This document shows positions 30,812 through 47,328 of a DNA stretch of 64,000 nt, in pieces. Under the pieces are notes generated by a model that ran no database searches, was not told where the DNA came from, and saw only the letters and a list, made by a program, of their open reading frames with translations. Location: the IMG/VR virus record IMGVR_UViG_3300023184_000025, positions 281,155 to 345,154 of that record; one strand, 5' to 3'. The stretch's first letter is position 1, and every line of letters starts with the position of its first letter. Made by a program: the position numbers and the translations under genes.

Positions 30812-31516
30812 TCAAATCAAATGGTTACTAATAACATATTGTAGCACATAATTGCTCCAAAAGCTATGAGCAGGTTTACCAAAATGATAAGAATTGGGTG
30901 CTACTGTATCAAAACCACGTTGTTTAATTATATCCGAAAATGTAGATTTTGGTTTATAAGGATCCATATAACTTACTCCCCAACTGCGTTGATCAGAAAT
31001 TTTGGAAAAATCTGAGTTGCCATTAAAAAATACATGTTTAACATTTAGATCATCAAGCCGGCAATGTAGTTGCCAAACATCATTGTGCGCTTCTTCAGTC
31101 TTTTTGCGCCAATCAACTGTGGCAACAAACTCTTTGTATCGTTGTTGCAGTTCAGGTGGAACATCATCAATTCCGCTGGCGTTCACTTGATAGTAAACAC
31201 CGTTGTATAACCATTCTTCTCTTTCCCATGTACTCCACTGAATAATCATCAATGTTTCATATAGGTTACTAGCATGCTCTGTTAGATATTTTTCCGTAGT
31301 TCTAATAATACGTGCGTTTGAACTAGCTGACTCAGCATCATACCAAAAACCTGCTTTGATTGCGTCGGCTAATGTTTTCCCCCAAGAGGCAATGATATTT
31401 TCAGGATGCGGTCTACGGCCCATGTATGTGTACTTTTGATCATCCTCGGCAAATGCATAAGGAGTTACAATTTCTGCACCGGCTGTGTGACTATCACCGT
31501 TTACATATAGAATCAC
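30812..31516 (-). CDS. SGNH-like protein
   Basis: YVNGDSHTAG, SNARI, HFGKPAH. Confidence 0.6.
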   Translation of the reverse strand: MILYVNGDSHTAGAEIVTPYAFAEDDQKYTYMGRRPHPENIIASWGKTLADAIKAGFWYDAESASSNARIIRTTEKYLTEHASNLYETLMIIQWSTWEREEWLYNGVYYQVNASGIDDVPPELQQRYKEFVATVDWRKKTEEAHNDVWQLHCRLDDLNVKHVFFNGNSDFSKISDQRSWGVSYMDPYKPKSTFSDIIKQRGFDTVAPNSYHFGKPAHSFWSNYVLQYVISNHLI

Positions 31517-31983
31517 ACCAGTTCCTTTTGTTTTTCTGCGGCAACTACTCGTTTGCGCAGACTTGAACTTGAAAAACTGTGATCGCGACTGTTGAACACA
31601 TGTTCAATCTGAAGGCCTATACCTTCGTTACGTCCGGTGAAGTTGGTGTCTTCATATTCTTTCCCAAGGATGCGCACATCAATGGGCAAGGTCAATATCA
31701 AGTCAATTAGGTCTTGCTCGGTAGTGTAAATCACAATTTCATCTACAAAACGACAAGCACTCAATTGTATCTGACGCTCTACAATACTTTGCACAGGGGG
31801 ATTTTTTGAATCTGGTCGATCAACGCTGGCATCTGTTTGTAATCCTGCAATTAAATAATCGCAATGATTCTTTGCTTCGGCTAACATTGCTATGTGTCCA
31901 GCATGAAGCATGTCAAATTGACTGAATGTGATGCCAATTTTTTTACCTTGTACTTTGAGTTCTTTAATGCGATTAAAAATCAT
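31513..31983 (-). CDS. cytidylyltransferase (TagD-like)
   Basis: FDMLHAGH (HxGH), SSSSLRKR. Confidence 0.85.
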   Translation of the reverse strand: MIFNRIKELKVQGKKIGITFSQFDMLHAGHIAMLAEAKNHCDYLIAGLQTDASVDRPDSKNPPVQSIVERQIQLSACRFVDEIVIYTTEQDLIDLILTLPIDVRILGKEYEDTNFTGRNEGIGLQIEHVFNSRDHSFSSSSLRKRVVAAEKQKELV

Positions 31984-32545: not shown

Positions 32546-32836
32546 TTATATCCATCCTCCTGCTCTAACAATACCAATTACACCAACTAGGATCCAAAAA
32601 GCATTTAACAGCGTATATGCTGGATCTTTCTTTAGTTTGGCACAATATGTTAACAGTACAGCATCGATAGTGTTAAAGACCCAAACAAACATAAACGGAC
32701 TTGAAGGTCCTAACCATGACACCAAACTAAAACTGATAATACGCATGATAACCCCAACCATTTCCATTTGTGGAACATGCGATTTAATATAATTCAAAAC
32801 AAAATTCATTTTTATTTCCCCCACCCATTTCCCCAT
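32546..32836 (-). CDS. small membrane protein
   Basis: Three hydrophobic segments. Confidence 0.6.
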   Translation of the reverse strand: MGKWVGEIKMNFVLNYIKSHVPQMEMVGVIMRIISFSLVSWLGPSSPFMFVWVFNTIDAVLLTYCAKLKKDPAYTLLNAFWILVGVIGIVRAGGWI

Positions 32837-33696
32837 AAGTCAACGTGTAGCCTAGGGCTGTAGTAATAACCTCGACTGCATGCCCAATCTGCTACACGAA
32901 CACGATTCTGCGCATAAGGAGTAACCACACCACCCTGTGGCATAACGTAAACTACACCGGTAAATCCACCTGCTCTAAACTCTTTGACTGCACGTTCTAC
33001 TTCAACAAAGTGAGCGTCTGTTTCAACCACAAACTTGAGATATACTGTGCCCAGTGCTTGATAGCTGGCAACAATGTCTGGACAAATTGCTTCTTCCCAA
33101 CTCTCACCACTGGCACTGAGTTTGGCACTGACGCTAAACGTAACAAACCGATCTTGCTTGGTACCAAGTGCAGGTTGTTGCCAAGCTTGTAAAAAATCTC
33201 TGAATCCTGTTTGTAATTTCTGAGTGCCGTTGGTTTCAAATGTAATGTTACACAGGTCATTCATGCTTGGATTACTAATCAATTCCTCATACGCACGTTG
33301 CCAACCCAACAACGGCTCACCACCTGTGATAACCAAATGTACATCATTGCCATTATCTTGTACCCATTTATTGTTAGGCGTAAGTTTTAACATATCTGCA
33401 ATTAATTGTGCAGTTTCAAATGTTGGACTCAGATGTTTAAAATCTGGATGCCAACTAGCATAGCTGTCACACCCTGTATTAACCAGCGGAAGACTAAGGA
33501 AGTCTTTGTACAAATGTACTTGTTTGGCAACTTCATCTGCTTCTGTGCTTTTTACTCCTGGCGCACATCCAAAACCTGAGCAGGTAAAGTTACAGCCGAA
33601 TGTACGCAGGAATACACTGGGTACTCCGACAAAGCGACCTTCGCCTTGTGCTGAATAAAATAGTTCGCTTACTTTTATTTTCATATTATGTTCCAC
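32812..33696 (-). CDS. queE: 7-carboxy-7-deazaguanine synthase (radical SAM)
   Basis: ELFYSAQGEG..VFLRTFGC, CDS, VITGGEPL, ETNGT, SAKL, RLHVDLWG. Confidence 0.88.
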   Translation of the reverse strand: MEHNMKIKVSELFYSAQGEGRFVGVPSVFLRTFGCNFTCSGFGCAPGVKSTEADEVAKQVHLYKDFLSLPLVNTGCDSYASWHPDFKHLSPTFETAQLIADMLKLTPNNKWVQDNGNDVHLVITGGEPLLGWQRAYEELISNPSMNDLCNITFETNGTQKLQTGFRDFLQAWQQPALGTKQDRFVTFSVSAKLSASGESWEEAICPDIVASYQALGTVYLKFVVETDAHFVEVERAVKEFRAGGFTGVVYVMPQGGVVTPYAQNRVRVADWACSRGYYYSPRLHVDLWGNGWGK

Positions 33697-34534
33697 ATGA
33701 TATCAAACACTGATTGTGTGTTAGATCCAGTTTATTATACAGTAATTTGTCAATGCTGTCAAATTTTTCTACAGGAGCAAAAAAACAACAGGTACTTAAT
33801 TTTCCCGATGCGGCTAGATACACCGAGGGCGGAGATAAATGTATACAATTTTTTGGATCAACCACAGTTGACGTTTTTGGCATACGTATCAGATGTTGAA
33901 ATTCTACCGGCGGTAAAAGATCAAATTCCTCACCAGTTCTATAATGTTTGGCCAATTGACGATTGCGATATAATTTAACCAATTTAAAATGTTTAAATCC
34001 TAATTTCTGACTAGTACGTATACAATCTTTAACCTGGTGTTCGTTGTGTGCATATGGTATGAATTGCCAGGTTGCTGTTCCACCAGCTGATATAAATGCC
34101 TTGGCATTTTCAATTACTTTGTTATAGTCCGTACCTTGCCGATATATTTCGTGTACGCCTTCTAGTCCATCTATACCAAACCAAATATCATGATTAATAT
34201 CAGTTAATAAATTTGCTAAATCTTTCCACCATGCAGTAGTTCTTAAGCTACCGTTGGTATGTATTTGTATTTTTTGAGTGTGCGGTTTAGCAAGTTTAAT
34301 CAATTCAATAAAATTGTGAGCTATCACTGGATCACCGTAGTTTCCGCAAAATTGTATGCCTTCCAACATTGGCAGTCGATTTAAAATATCAGCCAACTGA
34401 TCAGTTTCAAGATCTTGTTCAACCAGTCCTGGCTTCAATCCATATCCATTGTTGTTTCTAGGACAAGCTGGGCACCAAGCATTACATTTTGAACTAGCTT
34501 CAACGTGAAGCCATTTAATGTCACTGGCTTTCAT
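33686..34534 (-). CDS. radical SAM protein with C-terminal twitch/SPASM-like Cys
   Basis: CNAWCPAC, GNYGDP, HTNGS. Confidence 0.8.
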   Translation of the reverse strand: MKASDIKWLHVEASSKCNAWCPACPRNNNGYGLKPGLVEQDLETDQLADILNRLPMLEGIQFCGNYGDPVIAHNFIELIKLAKPHTQKIQIHTNGSLRTTAWWKDLANLLTDINHDIWFGIDGLEGVHEIYRQGTDYNKVIENAKAFISAGGTATWQFIPYAHNEHQVKDCIRTSQKLGFKHFKLVKLYRNRQLAKHYRTGEEFDLLPPVEFQHLIRMPKTSTVVDPKNCIHLSPPSVYLAASGKLSTCCFFAPVEKFDSIDKLLYNKLDLTHNQCLISCGT

Positions 34535-34799
34535 ATATGGTTGACCACTGCTGTAGTTTTTTTCTTTTATTTTGAACAGCGGCTTGTATACTAGCATCAT
34601 CGAGAATTTTAAGTTCTCTAAGCAATTCAACCATGCATAGCACATCGCCTACTTCTTCGCACAACAATTCTCTATTAGACATGCCACGTTTTAAATGAGT
34701 TTCATCTATGCCAAATCTACGTATCTTGCTTACAATTTGTATAACCTCAGCACATTCTTCCTGGAGGATATCCATCACTTCGTTTATTTTCGAGTTCAT
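34521..34799 (-). CDS. MazG-like NTP pyrophosphohydrolase domain protein
   Basis: LQEECAEVIQ..EEVGDVL. Confidence 0.75.
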   Translation of the reverse strand: MNSKINEVMDILQEECAEVIQIVSKIRRFGIDETHLKRGMSNRELLCEEVGDVLCMVELLRELKILDDASIQAAVQNKRKKLQQWSTIYESQ

Positions 34800-34820
34800 A
34801 AGTTTGATATTTCTTTTAAA

Positions 34821-35018
34821 TTATCGTTGACCCTGTGCAATCAGTCTATTAACCACATTGAGATCAAACTCTAAACTAACAATTTTATTTTTAAGTGCTT
34901 GATATTCTTCACTGTGTACATCTTTATCATGCGTTACAATGTCAAAGTACATGTCCGCGACTTCTGCGTGTAGTTTTCTAATATCATATTCTAACAACTC
35001 TCGTCTATCTGCTAACAT
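34821..35018 (-). CDS. hypothetical coiled-coil protein (65 aa)
   Basis: ORF. Confidence 0.6.
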   Translation of the reverse strand: MLADRRELLEYDIRKLHAEVADMYFDIVTHDKDVHSEEYQALKNKIVSLEFDLNVVNRLIAQGQR

Positions 35019-35027
35019 ATACTTTCC

Positions 35028-35798
35028 TTATAACTTCTTTGCTTTTATTAAAAGATGCCAGCCTAGATATTCTTTAACTGCTTCTCTCATTACTTCGGGC
35101 ATTGCTTCAAACCATGGTTCAAGTTCAAAAATTCCCTGCTTATATTTTTCTACATTGTACATAAAGCAATGACTCTGTCGTAAGCGTAACAAATCAAAAT
35201 CTTCTCTAAGCAATTCGTGTATCTCTTCAGCAGTATATGCTTCTGCATATGGACAATTTGCTTGTGCTTCAAACTGATCCAGCCCTTTACGAATCATGGC
35301 ATACTTCCAGGAGTTTTTGGCGTAGACCATAAACCTAAACTCGCCATCGTGTTTTAACAAACTGGCAACAGTTTTAATATGATCTTGCATGCCAGGATAA
35401 TGATGCAGTACCCCGTAGCTGTAGACTAAATCAAATTGTCCCAAGTCCAGTACTTTAGGGTCAGTAATATCAATATTGTGAAAACCACCTTCGAGATCAT
35501 AAACATTAAATCTTTGTTTGCACAGATCTAAACTAGCATCTGACAGATCAATACCTACATACTCGGCACCGTGACGAGCAAACTGTTCTGCATCTGTGCC
35601 AATACCACATCCAATTTCTAATACACGTTTACCTCTCCATTGATGGAATCCAGCAAAGTCAAGGATGTGTGGTTCAGAACGATATCTTTTGCTTGTTACT
35701 TCGTCAAAGTACTGGTCAGAGCCAATGGGCGCACTACTATGCCCAACATTACACGGTTGTGTATTCCAGTAGTCAAGAATTCTTTTTTGTAAATCCAT
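35028..35798 (-). CDS. class I SAM-dependent methyltransferase
   Basis: VLEIGCGIG, GIDLS, FDLVYSYGVLHH. Confidence 0.88.
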   Translation of the reverse strand: MDLQKRILDYWNTQPCNVGHSSAPIGSDQYFDEVTSKRYRSEPHILDFAGFHQWRGKRVLEIGCGIGTDAEQFARHGAEYVGIDLSDASLDLCKQRFNVYDLEGGFHNIDITDPKVLDLGQFDLVYSYGVLHHYPGMQDHIKTVASLLKHDGEFRFMVYAKNSWKYAMIRKGLDQFEAQANCPYAEAYTAEEIHELLREDFDLLRLRQSHCFMYNVEKYKQGIFELEPWFEAMPEVMREAVKEYLGWHLLIKAKKL

Positions 35799-35800
35799 AA

Positions 35801-36643
35801 TTAATTAAATTTTGCCATTTGTTTATTTGGGTCAAACTCGCCAAGCATTCTAATCCAAGGGTCTTGTTTGCCTGCTAACACATTCATAAACCAACTAACA
35901 TCTTCACCTCGAGCATGCATAAACCAAGCAATTTGTCTAGCATCTAAAAAGCGTTGTCGACGATATTCAAAGTGATTAAAGTCTCTAGGGTCTTCTGGTC
36001 GTCCTTCGTACATGATTCTCTTCTGGAAAGTTTCGTCGTTGTTATTACCAGTTAGGTCGTGACGATCATGCAAGACATCAACCGAAATAGTTTCCATAAT
36101 ATTTAAGATATAGGCAATTTGACTAATCCATGCGTCCGAAAGTTGGTGTGCGCTTAGATAATTAAACAACATTAACCATTCTTTTGGAACAATCGGAAAT
36201 ACAGCATAAGGATGCTCGTTGTGAGTGGGCATTCTTAGCACACGAAACTTACCGTTGTGCTCTTTTATTCGACTGTCCCAGCCCTGTGTTTTCATAAGTG
36301 CATCGTCATTCCAGAACATTAGCCAACGTGCATTACTTTTTTTAGCCAGTTCTGTAACATATTCATTTAAACGAGTGTAACCAACTGGTTTAAATTCTAA
36401 TATTGACGTCGAAATACCCCGACTATCAAATTCTTTAAAAACGTTTGCCGCCGCCCACTCAATGGAGTCTTTGTCGTCTTCATCCATGCCTAGTAAAATT
36501 TGTATTGATTTTACATCATCGGCCAGGTCAATCAAGCTGTTAAGACTATCAAGCAATGCAGTTGTGCGTCCACGGGTGGGCAACAACACAGCCACATCAT
36601 ATTTTGGTTCCAAAATTAAAGCTGGTATTTCAATCAATTTCAT
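35801..36643 (-). CDS. GT-A (family 2-like) glycosyltransferase
   Basis: VLLPTRGR, MFWNDD, DAWI. Confidence 0.7.
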   Translation of the reverse strand: MKLIEIPALILEPKYDVAVLLPTRGRTTALLDSLNSLIDLADDVKSIQILLGMDEDDKDSIEWAAANVFKEFDSRGISTSILEFKPVGYTRLNEYVTELAKKSNARWLMFWNDDALMKTQGWDSRIKEHNGKFRVLRMPTHNEHPYAVFPIVPKEWLMLFNYLSAHQLSDAWISQIAYILNIMETISVDVLHDRHDLTGNNNDETFQKRIMYEGRPEDPRDFNHFEYRRQRFLDARQIAWFMHARGEDVSWFMNVLAGKQDPWIRMLGEFDPNKQMAKFN

Positions 36644-37173
36644 TCAAATAAATCCTCATTCCATTCTCTATGGCCTTCTCTAAAAGCCATGTTTGCTTGT
36701 GTTTCACGCACTTCCACTCGGTAGCACCATAAACGACTTGCTTCGTACTCTCCCCAAAAGTCAGGAATGTAAACACCGTTAACATACTTGTACAGCATGT
36801 CTGCAAGTGATTCACATCCAACTCTGGGCAAGATTGTGAGCTTGGCCAGTTTCCGACGTTCCATTTCCTTGTAGAACTCCAGTTCAGGATCATCGGCACT
36901 GACCAAGGTAGTGTGATCAAATTGATCTTCTAATATCTTTTTAAGTTCTTTGAGACCACCATAGTCGGCTGCCCAGTTACGAACATCAAGATTGTTTGTA
37001 CCAAAGTAAAATTTCATACTAAACGAATAACCATGATTCAAATTACAATGACTATCGGCCCTCCACTGTCTGTAAGCGCACGGAAATGCGTCAATGTACT
37101 CTTTGGTACTGGTAAACTTGTAGGTTACCGGTTGATACTCTTGCTTGACTACTGCGTTAAAATTGTCTGACAT
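36640..37173 (-). CDS. queD: 6-carboxytetrahydropterin synthase (QueD/PTPS family)
   Basis: HCNLNHGY, DYGGLK, FDHTTL, CESLA, VEVRET. Confidence 0.8.
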   Translation of the reverse strand: MSDNFNAVVKQEYQPVTYKFTSTKEYIDAFPCAYRQWRADSHCNLNHGYSFSMKFYFGTNNLDVRNWAADYGGLKELKKILEDQFDHTTLVSADDPELEFYKEMERRKLAKLTILPRVGCESLADMLYKYVNGVYIPDFWGEYEASRLWCYRVEVRETQANMAFREGHREWNEDLFE

Positions 37174-37191
37174 GCTGTTTCTCCTATGTTA

Positions 37192-37221
37192 ATTATAGCA
37201 TAGGCTTGCAGAATTTGTAAA
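37192..37221 (-). promoter_or_regulatory. sigma70 promoter inside an RBS-occluding hairpin upstream of queD
   Basis: TTTACA-18bp-(TGC)TATAAT; CCTATG-N10-CATAGG overlaps the TAGGAG RBS. Confidence 0.6.
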
Positions 37222-37256
37222 GCGGGATGAATGCCAAAAAGACCGCTGAAGCTTGA

Positions 37257-37958
37257 CTACTTGGCTTCTACCACAATACGAACATTTCCGTCCATTTGTT
37301 CATTGTGATATGAATTTTTGCCAATGTCAACGTCCACAATTAAATAATTACAATCTATATTTGATAATGCATCACGGATGAACTGATCGTACAATACACC
37401 TCGAGGCGTTGCTGTGTTAAAAAGTTTAATTAAATCGGTTTCACTTGTAAAGTCGATGAATCTTTGAAAATTTAATGCCAAATATCCTCGTCCACCAGGT
37501 TTAATCATTGAAACAAATTGTTGTAATCGATTCTCGAATTTAGTTAATGAACAAAAATGTAGGGCACAAATCGAAAATACTGATTCAAAACATTGTTGAT
37601 GATTTTTGACATATTCATCATCAATTTGATCATCAATGTCTCGATAGTCATCCAGGGGATCTACGCCAACAATATTAGGTATGTATTTTTTGAAAATATT
37701 CCAGCCACATCCTAAATCATATATTGTGTCTGGTGATTTTTCCAACAATGGTTTTAGATAATAAAACGGTGTTACAGAAAAATAACTTTTTAATAAACGA
37801 TCTCCCCATATTTGTCTAGGAGTGCATGAAGATTTTTGATACGGCCAGTGCTTGGCCCAGACTAAATGATCAAAGTCTTTTTCAAGAGTTCGATATAAAT
37901 CTGTATTCTGAAACTCTTCTTTAAATCTGAGTAGATTGTATTCGTTTAAGTTATCCAT
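37257..37958 (-). CDS. methyltransferase-like protein
   Basis: YDLGCG, GVDP, FESVFS, IKPGG. Confidence 0.65.
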   Translation of the reverse strand: MDNLNEYNLLRFKEEFQNTDLYRTLEKDFDHLVWAKHWPYQKSSCTPRQIWGDRLLKSYFSVTPFYYLKPLLEKSPDTIYDLGCGWNIFKKYIPNIVGVDPLDDYRDIDDQIDDEYVKNHQQCFESVFSICALHFCSLTKFENRLQQFVSMIKPGGRGYLALNFQRFIDFTSETDLIKLFNTATPRGVLYDQFIRDALSNIDCNYLIVDVDIGKNSYHNEQMDGNVRIVVEAK

Positions 37959-37961
37959 ATA

Positions 37962-38645
37962 TTAATTCCTTTTACACGCATTAACAATATTCATAAACTC
38001 ATTGCGTACTGCTGGATCACTCTTGAATACTCCGCCAAGTTTGCTAGTGACTGTTGACGATCCTGTGTCTTCTACACCACGACTTTTTACACAGTAGTGT
38101 TGAGCATCAATGACCACTGCAATGTCGTCAGTTTCAAGAATATACTGTAATGCATGATACACTTGTTCTGTCAACCGCTCCTGAATTTGTGGGCGTTTGC
38201 TAAAGTATTCAACCACACGATTGATCTTTGACAAGCCCAACACCTTTTGTTTGGGAATGTAACCCACAGTTGCTAAACCATCAATCACAACAAAGTGATG
38301 TTCGCAGTTGCTTTGTACGTTGACATTACGCTCGATAACCATTTCATCGTACTTCATCTTGTTGTCAACTGTGGTACACTTTGGAAATGCTTCGTAATCT
38401 AGACCCCAAAAAATTTCATTCACATACATCTTGGCCACACGTTTTGGTGTGTCCATTAGACTATCATCACTGAGGTCTAATCCCAGCACCTCCATGATAT
38501 GCTTAAAGTCTTTTTCAATCAATTCAATTTTATCTTTACGATCAACTGCATGTTGAAAAGTAGGAGTTTCTACACCGCACTTGACCAAGTGGTTGTGTAC
38601 TAATAGACCCAATTCAGGGTCGCATTTTGTTTTGTTATATGACAT
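37962..38645 (-). CDS. folE: GTP cyclohydrolase I
   Basis: DTPKRVAK, SNCEHH, LGLSKINR, RPQIQERLT, HYCVKSRG. Confidence 0.95.
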   Translation of the reverse strand: MSYNKTKCDPELGLLVHNHLVKCGVETPTFQHAVDRKDKIELIEKDFKHIMEVLGLDLSDDSLMDTPKRVAKMYVNEIFWGLDYEAFPKCTTVDNKMKYDEMVIERNVNVQSNCEHHFVVIDGLATVGYIPKQKVLGLSKINRVVEYFSKRPQIQERLTEQVYHALQYILETDDIAVVIDAQHYCVKSRGVEDTGSSTVTSKLGGVFKSDPAVRNEFMNIVNACKRN

Positions 38646-38741
38646 ATTGATATCCTTCCTTACGCGGATTTTAAATTTTGATATTTGCTACCTTTGTGTA
38701 GCAAGAATATTTATTAAGTTTAACAGATTTATCTAAAAAAG

Positions 38742-39281
38742 TCAAACCCTAAAGCCAGAAATTTGGAGAGTATATTTGTCTTCCATACCTGCATTACAGC
38801 TCAGATGTTGGATATCACTGTCCCACACCCAGCCTTCGCCTTGTTTCCAACCAACACTGGTTTCAAAAGTATTGTCCGGAGAAATATATTGGATCATTTG
38901 CCCAAATTTGTAATCTTCTAAATAGACATTGGCTCTAACTTTTAGTTCAGTACGTTCAGGAAACCGTTTTTTAATTTGGTAGAATGTATCTTTGTGCAAG
39001 GTGGTTATACAGCCAGGTTGTTGTCTAATACTTGACATAGTGACAATTTCCATACCTAACTGCTGACCAATTTCTGTAAAGTCCACCTGATCCGGAGTCC
39101 ACCAAAGTTGATTAATTTTAGTATTTTCATAACAGTAACTTTTTGGCAACCCGCCATATGATGCATAAATGTCGGCCATTTCGGTAACCTGATGCTTGAT
39201 ACATGTATCTTCGTGAGTGGTATAGTTGGCATTTAGAAAAATACCAAAATCATAGTCTAGTTTAATTTTTTGTACAAACAT
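38742..39281 (-). CDS. 2OG-Fe(II) oxygenase-like protein
   Basis: LHKDT (HxD) and distal HLSCNAG. Confidence 0.55.
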   Translation of the reverse strand: MFVQKIKLDYDFGIFLNANYTTHEDTCIKHQVTEMADIYASYGGLPKSYCYENTKINQLWWTPDQVDFTEIGQQLGMEIVTMSSIRQQPGCITTLHKDTFYQIKKRFPERTELKVRANVYLEDYKFGQMIQYISPDNTFETSVGWKQGEGWVWDSDIQHLSCNAGMEDKYTLQISGFRV

Positions 39282-39284
39282 TTT

Positions 39285-39881
39285 TTAATCCTCAATGGTT
39301 ATTTGTCTACAGTCTGGATATTCAACATACACGGGTTGCGGCCAATTAACCTTAATTATGTTGAGTAGATCCATACCAATTTCTGCTTCTTCTATGGTGG
39401 GCTTGTAATGATAACCCACTTTGAAAACCTGCTGTGATTCCCATGGCTTGATAGCTAAGTCTCTGCCATCGTAGCGTTGAGCCAACATGATATCGTAGGC
39501 TTCAACATCATCCAGCAAAATAGCACCACCACGACCAATGTGAAGTGGCTTGCCATGCCCAAAGCTCAGGCAGGTCAATGTGTCTGGGCGATACATATCT
39601 TTTTCAAGTCTGCGAGCACTATCCCAGATGCGTGTGCCAAGGAATGAATACTCTCCTACCCAACGTTGCCAAGCATGATCAAGATACTCATATTTGATAC
39701 CTAACTTGTGCATGGTCATTGGAATACTCAAGTAAGTGTAAGGAGTAAACTTGCACTCCTTGACTTGATCATATCGCAAACAAAGTTCAATGGCATGTGT
39801 ACAGCAATCAGTCATGATTGCATATGGTGCACCGGTAAACTCTGCTAGAGCTTGTTCAAATTTTAATATTTTGTCAAACAT
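39285..39881 (-). CDS. truncated DegT/DnrJ/EryC1-like PLP aminotransferase
   Basis: CCTHAIEL, WDSAR, SFGHGKP..GRGG; start at MFDKIL. Confidence 0.7.
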   Translation of the reverse strand: MFDKILKFEQALAEFTGAPYAIMTDCCTHAIELCLRYDQVKECKFTPYTYLSIPMTMHKLGIKYEYLDHAWQRWVGEYSFLGTRIWDSARRLEKDMYRPDTLTCLSFGHGKPLHIGRGGAILLDDVEAYDIMLAQRYDGRDLAIKPWESQQVFKVGYHYKPTIEEAEIGMDLLNIIKVNWPQPVYVEYPDCRQITIED

Positions 39882-41754
39882 TGTCAACTTTGTTAATTCT
39901 GTTTTTTGATACCGATGCTCGTCGACCAAAATATAATTGTTCAAAGAAGTCCTGTTTGTTTTTATGCTTAAATGGATACGAAATTTCAAGTGTGTTTGAA
40001 ACGTTTAATTCGTCAGAGTTGTTAAACACATAATCGTAAATGTTGTATTGATAGTCAACAGTATACGGGTAACTACCTTCATAATGATGTAGATAATCTG
40101 ATTGTAAAGATACCACTTCTTTATAAATTTCAGGATCCAACTCGCAAAATTCTTTGTTAATAATTTGATAAACTTCGTCAAGTGTTGAATCGACATTATC
40201 AAACAATATGTGAATACTAGTCCAAAGCGCACTATGTCCATCTCTATTTGGAATAATACTTTCGCCACTTTCTAAAAAAGAAACAATAAAATTCTTCATT
40301 CTATAGTATTCTTGAGTTAGTAAACTAGTACTGGGACCGTTGACAATTTTATTTTCAATTTGCGAATAGAAATCGTAGTAACTAATATTTTTATGCTTTC
40401 TTAAAAATCTACTTAGAATATGTGTGATACCACTATAATGATAAGTCATTATAATGTAACTGAACAAATAACTCTTAACAAAATCTTCAAGGGGCATGTA
40501 CTTTGTAGATTTGACTACTACTTCTTTTTCCATAATATCATCACCCTCGTTGACTAATGCACCAGTTACAAACTTTGGAACAGCAATACTTTCAATTTGG
40601 TGTAGAGTTCGTTGCTCATAGCTGTTAAGTTCAGAGTTTTCTAATAACTGCGCAAGCCAAACATCCAGGCTGTTGTGTTGCCCAGCCTCAAGTATCAGTC
40701 CATGATTTTGTTTCCAGGTTTCATAGGTCTCGTAAGGTAGTCCAAGGATCATTTCAGTGTATGCTGGAATGCCATTTTTAAAACATTCTTCTAGCATCTC
40801 TTTAAGATCGCTGATCTCCATATTTTTTCTTTTGATAGCATCAAGAACTTGATCGTTCATGCTTTGCACACTAACAGTAAATCCTCTATTTTTATCATTG
40901 CTAAAAAATATTTTTGCAATTTCTATAATTTTTTGTTTTGCATTTTTAGCCCATTGAGCAATGACAACATGCGGGAATCCCTTTGTGTTTTGTAATTGGT
41001 GTATATGTTGTGCAAACTTTTTATCTCTTTCATAGAGCATGCCAAAATTTGCATCAGCAATAAACAAATATGCAACACGATTGTTGGCCATCCAGGTAAG
41101 CTCGTCTAACACCCGGTCTTCTGCAAATTTAAGAACCTTGCTGTATGTTAAGCTACCCCAATCACAAAAAGTACATGAGTACGGGCATCCGCGGTTGGTT
41201 TCTAATACTCCTTGCCAGTAGTACTCAGGATTGTCGTTGACTATTTTATCAAATACACCTGATGTATACGGGCTTGGATACTCTAAGTTGGCCATTCTAG
41301 CAAATGTACTGACTTTTTTAATTGGTGTTTCATTGTGTAAAGATAGTAGTATATCTAAAAATGCTGGCTCGCCCTCACCGTTGACAATTGTATCAACGTA
41401 TGGATGTTTCTTAAAGAAAGATTTTTCGTAAGGTAGTTTGGTAACTTGCGGCCCGCCAAATACAATAAGACACTTGGGCCATTTTTCTTTAATAGACTTG
41501 GCTAGTTTTTTACAATATTCGTAGTTCCAAACATAACAACTAAATGCTGCCACAGCTGGATTATCAAAGTTTTTGATTGTTTCATCAATTGACATTCTCT
41601 TGAAGACTAACTCTTTAAGGATAAAGTTATCCTTGATCACAGGATTTTGCACAGCAAAACTCCATAAGCACCCTACAGAATATGGCAACCAATAGCCCTC
41701 GGTTCCGCCAAACACATTTCCATGTGCGGGCTGTAGTAAGTAAACATTATGCAT
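39874..41754 (-). CDS. cobalamin-binding (class B) radical SAM protein
   Basis: FSCYVWN..VFGGP B12 domain; ETNRGCPYSCTFCDW. Confidence 0.88.
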   Translation of the reverse strand: MHNVYLLQPAHGNVFGGTEGYWLPYSVGCLWSFAVQNPVIKDNFILKELVFKRMSIDETIKNFDNPAVAAFSCYVWNYEYCKKLAKSIKEKWPKCLIVFGGPQVTKLPYEKSFFKKHPYVDTIVNGEGEPAFLDILLSLHNETPIKKVSTFARMANLEYPSPYTSGVFDKIVNDNPEYYWQGVLETNRGCPYSCTFCDWGSLTYSKVLKFAEDRVLDELTWMANNRVAYLFIADANFGMLYERDKKFAQHIHQLQNTKGFPHVVIAQWAKNAKQKIIEIAKIFFSNDKNRGFTVSVQSMNDQVLDAIKRKNMEISDLKEMLEECFKNGIPAYTEMILGLPYETYETWKQNHGLILEAGQHNSLDVWLAQLLENSELNSYEQRTLHQIESIAVPKFVTGALVNEGDDIMEKEVVVKSTKYMPLEDFVKSYLFSYIIMTYHYSGITHILSRFLRKHKNISYYDFYSQIENKIVNGPSTSLLTQEYYRMKNFIVSFLESGESIIPNRDGHSALWTSIHILFDNVDSTLDEVYQIINKEFCELDPEIYKEVVSLQSDYLHHYEGSYPYTVDYQYNIYDYVFNNSDELNVSNTLEISYPFKHKNKQDFFEQLYFGRRASVSKNRINKVDNV

Positions 41755-42445
41755 TTTTTGATTTTTTTATATAATTGTAAATATGCTCTGACCATATTTG
41801 GTGACCGTAATCATTAAGATGACAATCATTTTTACTTATCGCAACATTGTTGTCAACAATGAAATCCAACATGTATCCAGCACCAGCAAGTTTTAAATCT
41901 TGTGTACTTTCTTTGCTGAAATAAAAAGGAATATAAGTTCCTGGACACCGCAATTTTACACTATCAGTATAACTTAAAAAATTGCAAGTTTGTTCATATA
42001 ACGAATAATAATTGTCAAACCAATTATCATAAAAATTAATCCCAGTTGATGTAGGAGTTAGTGTCGACCATTTTTTTTGTGTATTAAGAAAATTGTTGTC
42101 ACTGCGAAATAACTGTTTTGTTTTGGTGGTATACACTAAACTTTTTTTGATAGCTTCTGTGTGTACTGGGTTATCATTGTCAATGATAAACGATTTGCGT
42201 GAAGGGTGACTCCATCCAATTATTACCAAATCGTTGTCTGTGATTCTGTTGAGATTTTCTAAAAACGTATGATAAATGAAAAAATTATCTGCTCCTGCTT
42301 GAGCATAATTTTCGTACTCTATATTTAGCTTTTTACTAAGAAGATTGGGCCATCCTGATTCGGGTGACCCAATATTGTAAGGCAAGGACATACTTTGTCC
42401 AAATACCCAAAGTTTACTGTTTTCTGTTGTACCAAAGCCAGGCAT
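41747..42445 (-). CDS. SGNH-like protein
   Basis: VFGQSMS, GADN, DCHLN..GH. Confidence 0.55.
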   Translation of the reverse strand: MPGFGTTENSKLWVFGQSMSLPYNIGSPESGWPNLLSKKLNIEYENYAQAGADNFFIYHTFLENLNRITDNDLVIIGWSHPSRKSFIIDNDNPVHTEAIKKSLVYTTKTKQLFRSDNNFLNTQKKWSTLTPTSTGINFYDNWFDNYYSLYEQTCNFLSYTDSVKLRCPGTYIPFYFSKESTQDLKLAGAGYMLDFIVDNNVAISKNDCHLNDYGHQIWSEHIYNYIKKSKNA

Positions 42446-43391
42446 GTTTAATTATATCATCTAGTGAAAATTGTTGTTTCCAATTGGTTAAAGAACTAAA
42501 TTTATCTGCACTGGCAGTTAAGATTGCAGGATCACCATCTCTTTGTGGTCCTATTTTTACCTGTAGTTTTAACCCTGTAATTCTTTCTGCTGAATTGATA
42601 ATTTCCTGATTACTCGATCCTGTGCTGGTTCCAAGGTTATAAGTCCCACTAGGAAGTTCAGCGTCAATTGCCAGTATGTGTGCGTGTGCAATATCCTCAA
42701 CATGGATATAATCTCTAATACAGGTCTTGTCGTCAGTGGGATAATTGTTACCATTGAGAGTGAATTCTTGACCGTCTCGCAGACTCTCCAACACACGAGC
42801 AATAATATGTGTTGCGTTGCGAGCTTGTCCGTGCTGTATTTTACTATCTGCGCCGCAGGCATTGAAATATCTAAATGCAATATATTCTAATCCATAGGCT
42901 ACTTTATAATCTTCCAGTATCCATTCCATGGCTCTCTTTGTTTCACCATACGGGCTAATTGGTTCACAAGGATCAACTTCATGACACGGAGTCATAATTG
43001 GATTGCCATAAACACTGGCGCTACTGCTAAAGATAATTCTGGGCCGATACTCTGCTGGTATACTAGAAATTCTATCTAGGAATTGTATATTCTTTTCAAT
43101 GTTGTTATTCCAGTATTCTTTTGGATTCTTAACACTGGGTCCAACTAGACTAGTTCCTGCACAATGAATGACCGCGGATGGCTTTGAGGCTTCGATAATA
43201 TTGATGATTTCCTCAGATGCAAAATCTCCTCTATGGAATTGATTTGGAACCAACATTAAATGTTTAGGCAACGGATTTTGATCAATACCAAGCACCATAT
43301 ACCCAAGCCTCTTTAACGAAATCATGGTCTGACCACCGATATATCCGGCAGCACCGGTGACTACTACTAATTTATTAGAGTCAACTTTCAT
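42414..43391 (-). CDS. galE: UDP-glucose 4-epimerase
   Basis: VTGAAGYIG, FSSSA, YGETK, RYFNACGA, IRDYIHV. Confidence 0.92.
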   Translation of the reverse strand: MKVDSNKLVVVTGAAGYIGGQTMISLKRLGYMVLGIDQNPLPKHLMLVPNQFHRGDFASEEIINIIEASKPSAVIHCAGTSLVGPSVKNPKEYWNNNIEKNIQFLDRISSIPAEYRPRIIFSSSASVYGNPIMTPCHEVDPCEPISPYGETKRAMEWILEDYKVAYGLEYIAFRYFNACGADSKIQHGQARNATHIIARVLESLRDGQEFTLNGNNYPTDDKTCIRDYIHVEDIAHAHILAIDAELPSGTYNLGTSTGSSNQEIINSAERITGLKLQVKIGPQRDGDPAILTASADKFSSLTNWKQQFSLDDIIKHAWLWYNRKQ

Positions 43392-44584
43392 TCAACTTTC
43401 CTAACTTTGTATTTTGCCCCTGCAACATGATCACGATATCGATTACCTGCACGATTCCACTGCTCTCCTTTGCCTTCCATGATATCACAGATTCTATCAA
43501 TGGTTCCATTGTTCCAGTCGCTGATAAGACCAATATTATGATGAGATTTTTCTAATAGATTATTAAGTTTCCTAACTACATCATCCTCACTCCAGGGAAT
43601 GTACAGACGGTCTAGGTCGTTGGCAAATGTTTCTGGAAAACTACGATAAGCAGGGTAAAGCACATTAGCGCCAAGTGTGTCAGCTTCTGAAACTGTGTTT
43701 GATACCCAGTCTTGAAGAGCACAATTGAAAAGAACACGAGTGTCATTAAGAAGAGAGTAATACTCATTTTTAGTTAAGTTTTCATGAATCTCAAGTAATC
43801 CACTAGCCTGTAATTTGCGAGCACGTTTTACATAATTATTATTGTTTGATCGCAACGGACCTCCAGAGAAGATAGCAAAGCTAATCTGAGGCTGTTCTTC
43901 TTGAACACGTTCAGCCAGGTCCATAAAGAAACCTGGTTGCTTCTCCTGGTCAAATCTTGCGGCAAACCCTACCCGCATTTTACGATCGGCAAATGGTCGG
44001 ATATTTGCTGTGCCACCTATGCGTTCTAACACTTCTTCTTTGCCAAATGCCAAGCCGCTAATATTGTAGATAGGTGCAGTCCAATTGGCAATACGCATGT
44101 GGGCTACCATTTCTTCGTTGGTAGCCAGTACACCTGTAACAAATTCATTGACCATTTGTTCATACAAACTCATCCACTTGCCCATGCCCCATACATGTAC
44201 AAAGTCGTCAGGATCAATAGCCTGTGCCAGACAACGAACATACACACGAGGTCTTTGTTCTGTTGGAATTTGATTCATGATATAAGGCAAGCTTTCAATG
44301 CCTGGCTGGAACATGTCTTCAAAGTACACAACATCTTTTCCTGAGCATTCACCATTGCGCATCAGCTGTACAAGATTCATCATCTGACTCATGCCAAAGT
44401 AACTGCGCCCGTGTGCGTCCAGGACCTGACCTACACTAATACTTTTAGTGTTGTCAATGGTAGATCCAGGAACATACACTACATCAATACCTCGACGTTC
44501 AAATACACGTCGATTCCATTCAGTAAGTTGTAGTGTGTAGCGGGCTTCGTATGACTCCAGACCCATGTAAAATAGTTTCCTCAT
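43388..44584 (-). CDS. GT-B glycosyltransferase (possible DNA/base glycosyltransferase)
   Basis: GFAARFDQEKQP, NTVSEADTLG..PAY..FPE GT-B signature. Confidence 0.7.
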   Translation of the reverse strand: MRKLFYMGLESYEARYTLQLTEWNRRVFERRGIDVVYVPGSTIDNTKSISVGQVLDAHGRSYFGMSQMMNLVQLMRNGECSGKDVVYFEDMFQPGIESLPYIMNQIPTEQRPRVYVRCLAQAIDPDDFVHVWGMGKWMSLYEQMVNEFVTGVLATNEEMVAHMRIANWTAPIYNISGLAFGKEEVLERIGGTANIRPFADRKMRVGFAARFDQEKQPGFFMDLAERVQEEQPQISFAIFSGGPLRSNNNNYVKRARKLQASGLLEIHENLTKNEYYSLLNDTRVLFNCALQDWVSNTVSEADTLGANVLYPAYRSFPETFANDLDRLYIPWSEDDVVRKLNNLLEKSHHNIGLISDWNNGTIDRICDIMEGKGEQWNRAGNRYRDHVAGAKYKVRKVE

Positions 44585-44593
44585 GGTAACCCC

Positions 44594-44800
44594 TTAAGGT
44601 CTAGTGTCAGCAGTCCACATGTCCTTGGCGTTTTTGCCCTGGGCATGTTTGCTGTGTTGTTGCCAGGCATAACTTTTCCAGTTATACAAATCGGACTCGT
44701 TGTAACGATACCCAAACCTAATACAAAAATCTAGAAATTTTTCTAGCTCTTCAAAAATTTGATTAAGACGAGGGTTGGGTTTAAATGTAGGCTTGGCCAT
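44594..44800 (-). CDS. hypothetical protein (68 aa)
   Basis: ORF with GGAA RBS. Confidence 0.65.
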   Translation of the reverse strand: MAKPTFKPNPRLNQIFEELEKFLDFCIRFGYRYNESDLYNWKSYAWQQHSKHAQGKNAKDMWTADTRP

Positions 44801-44811
44801 ACTGTTTCCTA

Positions 44812-45255
44812 TTAAATTTTAATTGACAAACTAGGGCGAGAAATTTCATATTTGATCAAAGCGCCGTTCTCACCATCTTCGGCCACTTCAATCCAGACCG
44901 CACGGTCAGGATACCTTTCGGCAATCTGTGTGTACAAGTCATCACTGATCATTTCACAACTTTTAAAGTTGAGTTCTAGCGTTCCGCCAGCATACAGTTT
45001 CTCCAACCAGCGTTTGAACTGGATGAATTCAATATCGCGATCATTATGAAAAACATCGATCCAAACTCGGAAATGGAATATGTGTCGATGAGGTACCCCA
45101 AGAAAAGACACATCATATTCATCACCGGTCGCCAGTGTTGGATCACTAGCGGCAGCAGGGTACTTGTGGATTCCTTCTTTGCGAAATGTGATCCAGATTT
45201 TTCGTTCTGCATGTTGTTTGATTCTTTCCACTTGTTCTCTTTGCTCTTGGTTCAT
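44812..45255 (-). CDS. second QueD/T-fold paralogue, DpdL-like
   Basis: LGVPHRHIF (LxxxHRHxF), DRDIEFI, SCEM, EDGENG. Confidence 0.65.
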   Translation of the reverse strand: MNQEQREQVERIKQHAERKIWITFRKEGIHKYPAAASDPTLATGDEYDVSFLGVPHRHIFHFRVWIDVFHNDRDIEFIQFKRWLEKLYAGGTLELNFKSCEMISDDLYTQIAERYPDRAVWIEVAEDGENGALIKYEISRPSLSIKI

Positions 45256-46195: not shown

Positions 46196-46888
46196 TTATT
46201 TCCTATCGCCAAACAGTTGTAACAAGTTTAAGAACAAGTTGATAAAGTCCATGTACAATGTTAGCGCACCGCCGACTTCGGCTGCCGGGCTAGTGTCTAC
46301 ACTGAGCTCTTCGCGAATCTTTTGTGTGTCATAGGCAGTTAGTCCCAGGAAGATAATGATAGCCAGTGCGGAGATCACCATCTGCATCACGGTGCTGCCA
46401 ATAAAGATATTAACGATACTGGCAATGCAGATGGCGATCAACCCCACAATCATAAACTTACCCATGCTATCTAAACTACGTTTGGTAAAATAGCCATAGC
46501 CACTCATGACACTAAACAATATAGCCGCGCCCATAAAGGCACTAACAATACTGCCCATGGTAAACACAGCGAAGATTGTAGCAAAACTCAATCCCATGAG
46601 TGCCGCAAAGCCATGTAAGCATAACTGTGCTACACTCTTGCTAGGGTTATTAGCTAATACCATACTAACGCCAAAGATTGCCGCCAATGGTGCAAAAATA
46701 ACAATCCACTTTAGCATGCCGGTAAAAAAGAATGCCAGCAACTCTGGACTAGTGCCTACAAAGTAACTAACAATCATTGATACAATGACTGCAAGGCTCA
46801 TGTGTCCATACACACGACCCATAGCAGAGTTAATTTCATCTGCTGAACGGTAAGGCAAGTTGTTGCCTGTATAAGTTGTTCCAAACAT
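46196..46888 (-). CDS. Bax inhibitor-1/YccA family membrane protein
   Basis: Seven TM helices, YDTQKI, LYMDFINLFLNLLQLFG. Confidence 0.92.
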   Translation of the reverse strand: MFGTTYTGNNLPYRSADEINSAMGRVYGHMSLAVIVSMIVSYFVGTSPELLAFFFTGMLKWIVIFAPLAAIFGVSMVLANNPSKSVAQLCLHGFAALMGLSFATIFAVFTMGSIVSAFMGAAILFSVMSGYGYFTKRSLDSMGKFMIVGLIAICIASIVNIFIGSTVMQMVISALAIIIFLGLTAYDTQKIREELSVDTSPAAEVGGALTLYMDFINLFLNLLQLFGDRK

Positions 46889-46889
46889 T

Positions 46890-47306: not shown

Positions 47307-47328
47307 TTTGCCACCGAGTAGTTTTTCC

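Follow-up and report, generated by a model that had tools for sequence, protein, structure and literature searches.

A predicted GT4-type glycosyltransferase encoded among the 7-deazaguanine DNA modification genes of a freshwater jumbo phage

The closest described counterpart of the locus studied here is the pathway by which Cellulophaga phage phiST replaces G in its DNA with 2'-deoxy-7-deazaguanine (dDG), using FolE, QueD, QueE, DpdL and DpdA3 (PMC10516641). Sugar decoration of an already non-canonical DNA base is represented by phage T4, in which AGT and BGT, soluble GT-B fold enzymes, use an NDP-sugar to glucosylate 5-hydroxymethylcytosine and so block nucleases, while in animal tRNA one GT-A and one GT-B enzyme (QTGAL and QTMAN) form galactosyl- and mannosyl-queuosine on a 7-deazaguanine nucleobase. 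In actinomycetes, HuiG, a GT4-type N-glycosyltransferase (PF13439 in those clusters), puts a sugar on the 2-amino group of a free 7-deazaguanine-derived base and is accompanied by SAM methyltransferases, the product, huimycin, being a secondary metabolite derived from preQ0 (which needs QueC), with no DpdA and no DNA involved (PMC7439116; 10.64898/2026.04.15.718813). Glycosylation of a purine in DNA has not been described. In Pseudomonas jumbo phage PA5oct (Wroclawvirus), G is modified according to restriction evidence rather than chemical identification of the base (PMC12191111), and its dpdA-queE locus is syntenic with the one described below.

We examined a window of 64,000 nucleotides (positions 281,155 to 345,154 of IMG/VR record IMGVR_UViG_3300023184_000025) belonging to a 345-kb freshwater jumbo phage; all coordinates are those of the window. 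A preliminary description had listed sugar and radical SAM tailoring genes interleaved with deazaguanine genes, and this gene list is confirmed: all listed genes exist in the order given, and all genes of the locus lie on the minus strand. However, the range it assigned to them (33686-44584) leaves out dpdL and a small ORF at one end and queE and a cytidylyltransferase at the other, a 65-aa ORF (34821-35018) and a second SGNH-like gene were not listed, and the TGT-like dpdA lies at 48781-50346. Its remark that each glycosyltransferase follows a QueD-family gene holds here, given that queD and the GT-A gene overlap by 4 nt and that the order dpdL, small ORF, GT-B is found at the other site, and it also holds across relatives. 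The arrangement is not an assembly artefact, since contigs from other metagenomes, 99-100% identical in the GT-B protein, show the same gene order and several independent freshwater runs hold the DpdL-GT-B-GalE stretch. The locus lies in the replication module between DNA polymerase and RNase H, and sigma70-like promoter matches precede queE, queD and dpdL.

The core genes correspond to a QueC-less, DpdL-type pathway. FolE (GTP cyclohydrolase I, 37962-38645) matches PF01227 at E 1e-62, and QueD (36640-37173), of the CPH4 synthase type, matches PF01242 at E 2e-14 and phrog_2389 at E 5e-35 and carries the CxxxHGY motif shared with phiST QueD. QueE, the CDG synthase (32812-33696), matches phrog_2076 at E 3e-50 and, over its N-terminal part, NCBIfam QueE models at E 1e-10. 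DpdL (44812-45255), a QueD paralogue proposed as a CDG decarboxylase, matches phrog_17812 at E 4e-36, is 36% identical to phiST DpdL and shows, as LGVPHRHIF, the LxxxHRHxF signature given in PMC10516641. The DpdA-type DNA guanine transglycosylase (48781-50346) is a long form of 521 aa with a DSGGFQ motif; on its own it gave no Pfam hit, but a profile built with its homologues matches only tRNA-guanine transglycosylases in the PDB (best E 8e-4) and the homologue in phage X1 is annotated queuine tRNA-ribosyltransferase. QueC and QueF are absent from the whole 345-kb genome. The phiST cluster has the same enzyme set, likewise without QueC, and also includes a MazG-like gene, here found at 34521-34799 (PF03819, E 2.6e-5). 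It differs in having no GT4 gene, no sugar genes and no homologue of the 180-aa protein described below, and its DpdA3 is 259 aa and was not hit by the DpdA HMM built from the present family.

The GT-B gene (43388-44584) encodes a predicted GT4-type retaining glycosyltransferase. The AF2 model has a pLDDT of 93.7, and Foldseek matched it to MshA, BshA, GlgM, PimA, SenB and LmbT at E about 1e-11, whereas T4 AGT and BGT were not among the 50 listed PDB matches and no QTGAL or QTMAN proteins were among the 30 listed Swiss-Prot fold matches. The donor-site residues typical of active GT4 enzymes (R210, E214, K215, K272 and D292-x7-E300) are nearly invariant. The protein defines a distinct family of at least 787 clusters at 50% identity (E<1e-3, among 1.84 billion representatives).

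We examined the co-occurrence of the GT-B gene with dpdA and dpdL across phages, a test that had been proposed beforehand, and the outcome is strongly positive. Every strong member that could be placed sits in a deazaguanine cluster, usually touching dpdL and dpdA. In the window's own family, DpdL and GT-B are both found in 78 of 80 loci. All GenBank isolates with a strong member, namely BUCT-ZZ01, ACP17, X1, BUDD, BCSR5, the PA5oct group and Phosso, have dpdL within 3.7 kb, and 5 of 5 sampled distant metagenomic homologues lie within about 0.5 kb of dpdL, four of them under 50 bp. Furthermore, of 80 distant IMG/VR loci (median 33% identity to the window's GT-B), 78 carry deazaguanine genes and 62 have dpdL in the fetched flanks, 44 of them within 100 bp; in the two near-complete genomes without an adjacent dpdL, it lies elsewhere in the genome. 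A DpdA-type transglycosylase is encoded with the glycosyltransferase wherever enough flank is available. In contrast, a more distant relative in Xanthomonas phage PhiXhv-12 (HMM E 6.5e-26), in which the N-terminal signature is missing, sits with GlmS and a deacetylase and without deazaguanine genes.

Other genes accompany this association to different degrees. An unknown protein of 180 aa, u180 (48064-48606), is present in 74 of 80 family loci, has homologues beside GT-B, DpdL or DpdA in ACP17, X1, BCSR5 and 53 of the 80 distant loci, and is fused to DpdL in three loci; its AF2 model (pLDDT 77) gave no convincing fold match. A cytidylyltransferase-like nucleotidyltransferase of the HldE-C/TagD type (31513-31983; PF01467 E 1e-9, phrog_7878 E 5e-30) has homologues at 35-40% identity directly upstream of dpdL-GT-B-dpdA in 10 distant loci. 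The small basic ORF between dpdL and GT-B (u68, 68 aa, 44594-44800, pI 9.2) is conserved in 78 of 80 family loci, but no homologue was found outside the family. The UDP-hexose 4-epimerase-type SDR (GalE-like, 42414-43391; PF01370 E 6e-49) is present directly after GT-B in 79 of 80 family loci and also lies beside GT-B in two loci whose GT-B is about 55% identical.

For GalE, the half-size DegT, GT-A, the radical SAM enzymes and the methyltransferases, the only link to the pathway is conserved position within this one phage family. A GT-A, GT2-like glycosyltransferase (35801-36643) matches phrog_14945, 'glycosyltransferase', at E 8.5e-8, shows LLPTRGR, DEDD and NDD motifs with invariant D54, D57, D113 and D114, and lies directly behind queD in 49 of 80 relatives; it had no PDB sequence match and was not found outside the family. 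A DegT/DnrJ/EryC1-like protein (39285-39989; PF01041 E 6e-14, partial match) is about half size, about 198 aa from the likely start at 39881, but the lysine of its SFxxxK motif aligns with the Schiff-base (PLP) lysine of solved aminotransferases, and it is present in 68 of 80 relatives at about 70% identity. A cobalamin-binding radical SAM C-methyltransferase-type enzyme (39874-41754; PF02310 plus PF04055) matches the NCBIfam KedN5 family at E 4e-66, below the cut-off, and is found in 20 of 80 relatives, usually between GT-A and queE. A second radical SAM enzyme, with twitch/SPASM-type relatives (33686-34645; PF04055 E 2e-6, phrog_21308 E 1e-29, CxxxCxxC motif as CNAWCPAC), occurs in 5 of 80, and a class I SAM methyltransferase (35028-35798; PF08242 E 8e-18) in 15 of 80. 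Other assignments are weaker. The possible methyltransferase u233 (37257-37958) gave only Pfam Methyltransf_25 and Methyltransf_11 at E 0.1 and is present in 7 of 80 relatives, many of which carry a HIT-domain gene in this slot instead. The probable 2OG/Fe(II) oxygenase (38742-39281), present in 11 of 80, gave no Pfam hit and rests on an Atlas feature match (0.97-0.99) to Asp/Arg-hydroxylase-like viral clusters, some carrying PF05118, and on an HxD...H pattern. The SGNH-like hydrolase or acyltransferase u232 (41747-42445), rare in relatives (5 of 80), gave no Pfam hit and was recognised by its GQS, GADN and DxxH blocks read from the sequence, while the second SGNH-like gene (30812-31516) matches DUF6071 (PF19547, E 2e-7) with an N-terminal GDSH block, also read from the sequence. 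The GalE, half-size DegT, GT-A, B12-radical-SAM and methyltransferase genes are specific to this phage family and sit in a cassette that swaps NDP-sugar enzymes between close relatives. The PA5oct locus, with the order DNA polymerase, clamp-like gene, DpdA, GT4-like EST35_0317 (HMM E 5e-86), DpdL, QueE and RNase H, lacks GalE (it has only a 172-aa Rossmann fragment), DegT, GT-A, the B12-radical-SAM enzyme, the methyltransferases and the cytidylyltransferase.

The preliminary description had offered either an undescribed glycosylated or methylated 7-deazaguanine, analogous to galactosyl- or mannosyl-queuosine, or a separate capsid or host-surface glycan pathway sharing the operon, and this interpretation is partly supported. 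Indeed, the co-occurrence favours the first reading for the GT-B gene and, more weakly, for the cytidylyltransferase, but the comparison with T4 AGT/BGT, also proposed beforehand as a test, was negative. The queuosine analogy cannot hold literally: the acceptor there is the cyclopentenediol of queuosine, and without QueC and QueF there is no preQ0, preQ1 or queuosine side chain to carry a sugar, so that the acceptor atom must be another one.

Three other explanations were considered, each less likely than the one we prefer. It is doubtful, though the least improbable of the three, that GalE, the half-size DegT, GT-A, the cytidylyltransferase, the SGNH proteins and the methyltransferases, with or without the GT4 enzyme, build a glycan on a virion or other protein or on a host structure and merely share the operon. 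Phage virion proteins can be glycosylated, the genome has other GT2 genes and hence also glycosylates other things, the cassette varies between close relatives as surface-glycan loci do, and apart from the cytidylyltransferase and the two GalE cases these genes were not found beside deazaguanine genes outside this family. However, they are interleaved gene by gene with folE, queD and queE in a fixed backbone across 80 relatives and sit in an early replication-type module, not among structural genes; only soluble NDP-sugar enzymes are present in the cassette, with no flippase, polymerase or lipid-carrier transferase seen, and the GT4 member is clearly tied to dpdL elsewhere.

It is also unlikely that the GT4 protein is an accessory of dDG formation or insertion, through a transient glycosyl intermediate or a structural role beside DpdA, DpdL and u180, leaving plain dDG in DNA while the other sugar genes serve another purpose. 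Its tight placement between dpdA and dpdL and the DpdL-u180 fusions, which suggest a multi-part machine, would fit this view, as would the report that dpdA plus dpdL of ACP17 alone gave no dDG in E. coli, for which the authors suspected missing enzymes (PMC10516641); the GT gene lies between those two genes, and this result also counts for the reading we prefer. On the other hand, the donor-site residues typical of active GT4 enzymes are nearly invariant, the nucleotidyltransferase and GalE travelling with the gene point to real sugar transfer, and phiST reaches full dDG replacement without it (PMC10516641). Least likely of all, the pathway could make a free huimycin- or dapiramicin-like 7-deazapurine glycoside, used against the host or competitors and not incorporated into DNA. 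HuiG offers a precedent, the nearest solved folds of the GT have small-molecule acceptors and methyltransferases accompany the GT here as in huimycin clusters, but the encoded DpdA, the position in the replication module and the resistance of PA5oct DNA at G-containing restriction sites (PMC12191111) argue against it.

Taken together, we consider it about as likely as not that the region is one DNA-modification locus producing a glycosylated, further tailored 7-deazaguanine. What homology establishes is the core: FolE, QueD and QueE make 7-carboxy-7-deazaguanine (CDG) from GTP, the pathway stops there as there is no QueC, and DpdL and the TGT-like DpdA complete the branch known from phiST. Comparative genomics in turn establishes that a distinct GT4-type glycosyltransferase belongs to this branch in many unrelated phages, most often encoded directly next to dpdL and dpdA and often with overlapping stop and start codons, together with u180 and, in one lineage, with a sugar-phosphate nucleotidyltransferase. 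Beyond this all is inferred, without any chemical datum or demonstrated sugar on DNA. Moreover, dDG has no hydroxyl or side-chain amine, so glycosylation would need an N2-, C- or other unusual linkage, the nearest solved folds act mostly on small molecules and not on DNA, and phiST shows that the GT is not needed for dDG as such. Conversely, there is no thymidylate-synthase-type hydroxymethylase that could supply a pyrimidine acceptor, and, unlike in T4, the base would be a purine without a hydroxymethyl acceptor. In our model, the nucleotidyltransferase and GalE would provide an NDP-sugar which the GT4 enzyme transfers to the 7-deazaguanine moiety, at N2, C7/C8 or another atom, either on the free base before its insertion by DpdA, in line with the gene order dpdL-GT-dpdA and the HuiG precedent, or on dDG already in DNA. 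In this phage family GT-A would add a second sugar, and the B12-radical-SAM enzyme, the SAM methyltransferases, the 2OG oxygenase, the half-size DegT and the SGNH proteins would tailor the sugar or the pyrrole ring. The result would be a bulky, strain-variable hypermodified G that shields the phage DNA from restriction and other DNA-sensing defences.

In order to place the locus in its genome, we first examined its surroundings. The window is the last 64 kb of a 345,154-bp virus record (CheckV completeness 99%), and all genes of the finding lie on the minus strand. A megablast of the region against GenBank phages found no near-identical phage, while near-identical DNA occurs in freshwater and lake metagenomes from several studies. 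Furthermore, two contigs from other metagenomes (loci L004 and L005), 99-100% identical in the GT-B protein, show the same gene order, and the arrangement is therefore real. The locus lies between a family-B DNA polymerase (52070-54730) and an RNase H/5'-3' exonuclease (29798-30805), and is syntenic with Pseudomonas jumbo phage PA5oct and Vibrio phage 2.275.O.

The preliminary description had listed sugar and radical-SAM tailoring genes interleaved with deazaguanine genes, and this observation held, as each gene on that list is present, although the range it gave cut off dpdL and the small ORF on one side and queE and the cytidylyltransferase on the other. The assignments differ in strength. 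They are strong for the GalE-type epimerase, FolE (PF01227, E 1e-62), QueD (PF01242, E 2e-14, and phrog_2389), QueE (phrog_2076, E 3e-50), the class I methyltransferase, the B12-binding radical SAM enzyme and the cytidylyltransferase-like gene. They are moderate for the GT-A, the MazG and the second radical SAM enzyme, and weak for the SGNH (motifs only), the 2OG oxygenase (language-model features only) and the 233-aa "methyltransferase" (E 0.1). The B12-binding enzyme has both the N-terminal B12-binding domain (PF02310, E 1e-9) and the radical SAM domain (PF04055, E 3e-12) of class B radical SAM methyltransferases, but scores 223 bits against the KedN5 family, below its 700-bit cut-off, so that no subfamily is assigned. 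The putative GT-A matches phrog_14945 (E 8.5e-8) and carries GT2-like motifs with invariant D54, D57, D113 and D114, while Pfam and PDB sequence searches gave no hit and a search of the PDB with its profile gave nothing usable. The DegT-like protein is about half size, about 198-234 aa where a full-length fold-type I PLP enzyme has about 360-400 aa, and matches only parts of the profile, but it keeps the PLP lysine; some relatives carry a full-length DegT as well.

We next examined the core pathway. The 147-aa protein upstream of the GT (44812-45255) carries LGVPHRHIF, that is, the LxxxHRHxF signature which, in place of CxxxHGH, defines DpdL, the QueD paralogue proposed as a CDG decarboxylase, and it is 36% identical to the DpdL of Cellulophaga phage phiST (PMC10516641). 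The 521-aa protein at 48781-50346 has the DSGGFQ motif and, although it has no Pfam hit on its own, a profile built with its homologues matches only tRNA-guanine transglycosylases in the PDB (best E 8e-4), which is weak but consistent with a DpdA-family DNA transglycosylase. QueD (36640-37173) has CxxxHGY in place of the canonical CxxxHGH, as do the QueD proteins of phiST, ACP17, BUCT-ZZ01 and BCSR5. QueC and QueF are absent from the whole genome: phmmer with a phage QueC and QueF found nothing in the genome or in about 160 GT loci, and PF06508 gave only a sub-threshold match outside the window (positions 44533-44826 of the record's contig; 15.6 bits, E 0.002) in a 282-aa frame, which is probably another PP-loop ATPase and not QueC. 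Hence the core is the QueC-less DpdL branch, with a pathway ending at CDG. In phiST this branch replaces all G by 2'-deoxy-7-deazaguanine (dDG) (PMC10516641). A Bax-inhibitor/YccA-like membrane protein, PsiE and a peroxiredoxin (46196-47850) are inserted between dpdA and dpdL; only 3-5 of 80 relatives have them in the fetched flanks, and they look like recent auxiliary inserts unrelated to the pathway.

The GT-B protein is seen by Pfam Glycos_transf_1 only below threshold (22.3 bits against a cut-off of 26.4), as a divergent family of its own. A 50-sequence alignment gave a confident AF2 model (pLDDT 93.7) with the two Rossmann-like domains of a GT-B fold. The best structural matches of this model are GT4 retaining enzymes, namely MshA, BshA, GlgM, PimA, SenB and LmbT, with a Foldseek probability of 1.00 and TM 0.55-0.66 to MshA, BshA, GlgM and PimA. 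In contrast, T4 AGT and BGT are not among the 50 PDB matches listed, and no thymidylate-synthase-type hydroxymethylase that could make a pyrimidine acceptor is encoded in the genome. The donor-site residues are invariant or nearly so: R210 is invariant, E214, K215, K272 and E300 are at least 90% conserved, and the EX7E motif reads D292-x7-E300 here and E-x7-E in ACP17, X1 and BCSR5. An N-terminal E10...R15-Y16-T17 signature peculiar to this family is conserved to the same degree. Against 1.84 billion representatives, phmmer found 787 clusters at E<1e-3 and 199 at E<1e-30. A prediction of a complex between the GT4 protein and DpdL scored 0.00 without a verdict, which is not evidence either way, and isoelectric points do not separate DNA-binding from small-molecule enzymes here.

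In order to see whether the GT-B gene follows the deazaguanine genes across phages, a check which the preliminary description had proposed, its genomic context was compared at increasing distances. The window's own family has more than 600 relatives in IMG/VR at 77-83% identity, with the backbone PolB-u314-u243-DpdA-u180-(u94)-DpdL-u68-GT-B-GalE-miniDegT-FolE-[variable]-QueD-GT-A-[B12-rSAM and/or MT]-QueE-CytT-DUF6071-RNaseH, and DpdL is found in 78 of the 80 GT-B loci fetched. In many relatives (among L004-L083, the loci of this family) variable extra ORFs of about 140-290 aa interrupt otherwise tight junctions in the slots u243/dpdA, u180/dpdL and u68/GT-B, and these may be mobile elements such as homing endonucleases. 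Among GenBank phages, strong members occur only in records that also have DpdL, within 3.7 kb: Synechococcus phage BUCT-ZZ01 (adjacent), Acidovorax phage ACP17 (DpdA3-GT-DpdL-QueE), Xanthomonas phages X1 and BUDD and Burkholderia phage BCSR5 (u180-like-GT-DpdA), the eleven PA5oct-group records (DpdA-GT-DpdL; HMM E 5e-86) and Sinorhizobium phage Phosso (DpdL-GT). In the T4-like cyanophage BUCT-ZZ01 (locus L084, 7093-7554 and 12001-13167) the GT is 68% identical to that of the jumbo phage, far closer than its other shared genes, which suggests transfer of the gene, and the cluster also holds a gene annotated xanthine-guanine phosphoribosyltransferase next to queE, which hints at a nucleotide-level route. 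The GT of ACP17 is ASD50404 and that of PA5oct is EST35_0317. DpdL occurs without the GT in phiST and its kin, RHph_I1_18, Ahp1, Bakedbeans, D479 and MA9V-3.

Five distant metagenomic homologues were sampled, at 29-42% identity, and all lie within about 0.5 kb of dpdL, four of them within 50 bp or overlapping it. Searches of IMG/VR with distant GT homologues as single queries found nothing, but a search with an alignment yielded eighty distant loci with a median of 33% identity to the window's GT. Of these, 78 carry deazaguanine genes, 62 have dpdL in the fetched flanks, 44 of them within 100 bp, and none has queC. Many of the loci without dpdL are cut at the contig end, and in the two near-complete genomes of that kind dpdL lies elsewhere in the genome. 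Among the phage and metagenomic loci compared, the GT is thus found only where DpdL is, but not the reverse, which is the pattern expected of an enzyme acting after DpdL. However, a clearly more distant relative (HMM E 6.5e-26, lacking the N-terminal signature), the nearest outgroup of the family, is present in Xanthomonas phage PhiXhv-12 and its kin, 227-kb phages with no deazaguanine gene nearby; there (locus L185, 6735-9969) it lies between GlmS and an LmbE-type deacetylase, in a trio reminiscent of the BshA/BshB and MshA/MshB logic.

Other genes travel with the GT to different extents. The 180-aa protein u180 (48064-48606) has homologues beside the GT in ACP17, X1, BCSR5 and 53 of the 80 distant loci, and it travels with DpdA, DpdL and the GT across lineages; the u180-like protein of ACP17 is ASD50402. 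It is fused to the C-terminus of DpdL in at least three distinct loci of metagenomic phages (L108, 4836-5618; L109, 5132-5992; L136, 5102-5998). Since an iterated u180 profile drifted into DpdL through these fusion proteins, the profile was built from stand-alone members only. No family match was found and its fold gave no convincing match: Foldseek against the PDB returned nothing below E 0.06, VIA-align gave Z of at most 6.7 (STAS domains; QueE at Z 5.1-5.9), within the stated noise of the tool, and a profile search of the PDB gave no usable hit. The possibility that u180 is a degenerate QueE was examined by a profile-profile comparison, which was negative (probability 0.2%). Homologues of the cytidylyltransferase-like gene at 35-40% identity lie directly upstream of dpdL-GT-dpdA in ten distant loci, and GalE lies beside the GT in two intermediate loci. 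In contrast, GT-A, mini-DegT, the B12-radical-SAM enzyme, the methyltransferases and the second radical SAM enzyme were not found outside the window's family.

Between the fixed backbone genes, close relatives swap several enzyme types. These are a HIT-domain protein of 130 aa, carried by 44 of 80 relatives in the slot between folE and queD where this window has the 233-aa weak methyltransferase-like gene instead, UDP-glucose dehydrogenase, GDP-mannose dehydratase and RmlD-like reductases, an NDP-hexose C-methyltransferase and an FkbM methyltransferase, a full-length DegT, cupins and KdsA, and further radical SAM/SPASM and SGNH proteins. All appear to be soluble, and no flippase, polymerase or lipid-carrier transferase was seen. 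Indeed, a Pfam Polysacc_synt_C hit in one relative (L047) first suggested a Wzx flippase, and so a surface glycan, but the full ORF is a 136-aa soluble, cupin-like protein among GDP-mannose dehydratase, sugar C-methyltransferase, SDR and KdsA-like genes, and this idea was rejected. Two further GT2-type glycosyltransferase genes lie elsewhere in the genome, outside the window (78393-78857 and 133691-133942 of the record's contig), so the phage also glycosylates other targets. Sigma70-like promoter matches are enriched in the region, 101 against 63±7.6 expected. They include a perfect TTGACA-17-TATAAT (33734-33762, minus strand) inside the 3' end of the radical SAM gene, 38 nt before the queE start, and near-perfect ones in front of queD and the dpdL unit. 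This fits early expression with the DNA-metabolism genes, but it is only a pattern match.

Taken together, homology establishes the route from GTP to H2NTP (FolE), CPH4 (QueD) and CDG (QueE), with DpdL and DpdA as in phiST, and the genomic linkage of the GT is well supported, whereas the presence of dDG or a derivative in virion DNA, sugar transfer by the GT, its acceptor and every later step are inferred and the chemistry is unproven. In this view, the nucleotidyltransferase and GalE would supply an NDP-sugar, which the GT4 enzyme would put on the 7-deazaguanine moiety, either on the free base between the DpdL and DpdA steps or on dDG already in DNA, and GT-A would extend the sugar. The B12-radical-SAM enzyme could methylate a sugar carbon or a pyrrole carbon, its class including enzymes that methylate indole C2, and the methyltransferases, the oxygenase, mini-DegT and the SGNH proteins would tailor the product further. 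Given that dDG has no hydroxyl, the link must be unusual. N2 has a precedent in huimycin, where a GT4-type enzyme glycosylates the 2-amino group of a free 7-deazapurine (PMC7439116; 10.64898/2026.04.15.718813), while C7/C8 attachment is conceivable but without precedent for a retaining GT4 enzyme.

The interpretation offered in the preliminary description, a glycosylated or methylated 7-deazaguanine analogous to galactosyl/mannosyl-queuosine or else a separate glycan pathway sharing the operon, is thus only partly supported. The co-occurrence with DpdL agrees with its first alternative as far as the GT is concerned, but QueC and QueF are absent, so that no preQ1 or Q could be made by the phage as an acceptor for a queuosine-type glycosyltransferase. 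Other explanations have to be weighed against DNA glycosylation: the GT could have an accessory role that leaves no sugar in DNA, the pathway could make a free deazapurine glycoside, or the family-specific sugar genes could build a protein or surface glycan.

Eight 7-deazaguanine derivatives are known in phage DNA and none carries a sugar, while all known DNA glycosylations sit on hydroxymethyl-pyrimidines. In the papers we could search, the DpdL branch is described without any glycosyltransferase and no report of this gene family or of a glycosylated 7-deazaguanine in DNA was found, although this literature is incomplete and the claim of novelty is provisional. The authors of the DpdL study note that dpdA plus dpdL of ACP17 gave no dDG and that other enzymes may be needed (PMC10516641); the GT gene lies between those two genes, and a GT belonging to the DpdL branch would, together with u180, offer a concrete candidate for these missing enzymes. 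Several GT-positive phages are in culture and 7-deaza-dG oligonucleotides are commercially available, which makes the hypothesis directly testable.

A GT that belongs to the DpdL branch would predict a new class of DNA hypermodification. It is possible, though on present evidence slightly less likely than not, that many phages, including abundant freshwater jumbo phages, the therapeutic candidate PA5oct, ACP17, Phosso and a cyanophage, carry sugar-decorated 7-deazaguanine in place of G, made by a dedicated GT4 enzyme working with DpdL, DpdA and u180. This would be the first glycosylated purine in DNA, possibly with an N2- or C-glycosidic link to the base, and it would bear on how PA5oct-like therapeutic phages meet restriction enzymes, END nucleases and DNA glycosylases. 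In the freshwater family, the sugar would be diversified by swappable NDP-sugar cassettes, as an arms race with DNA-sensing defences would predict.
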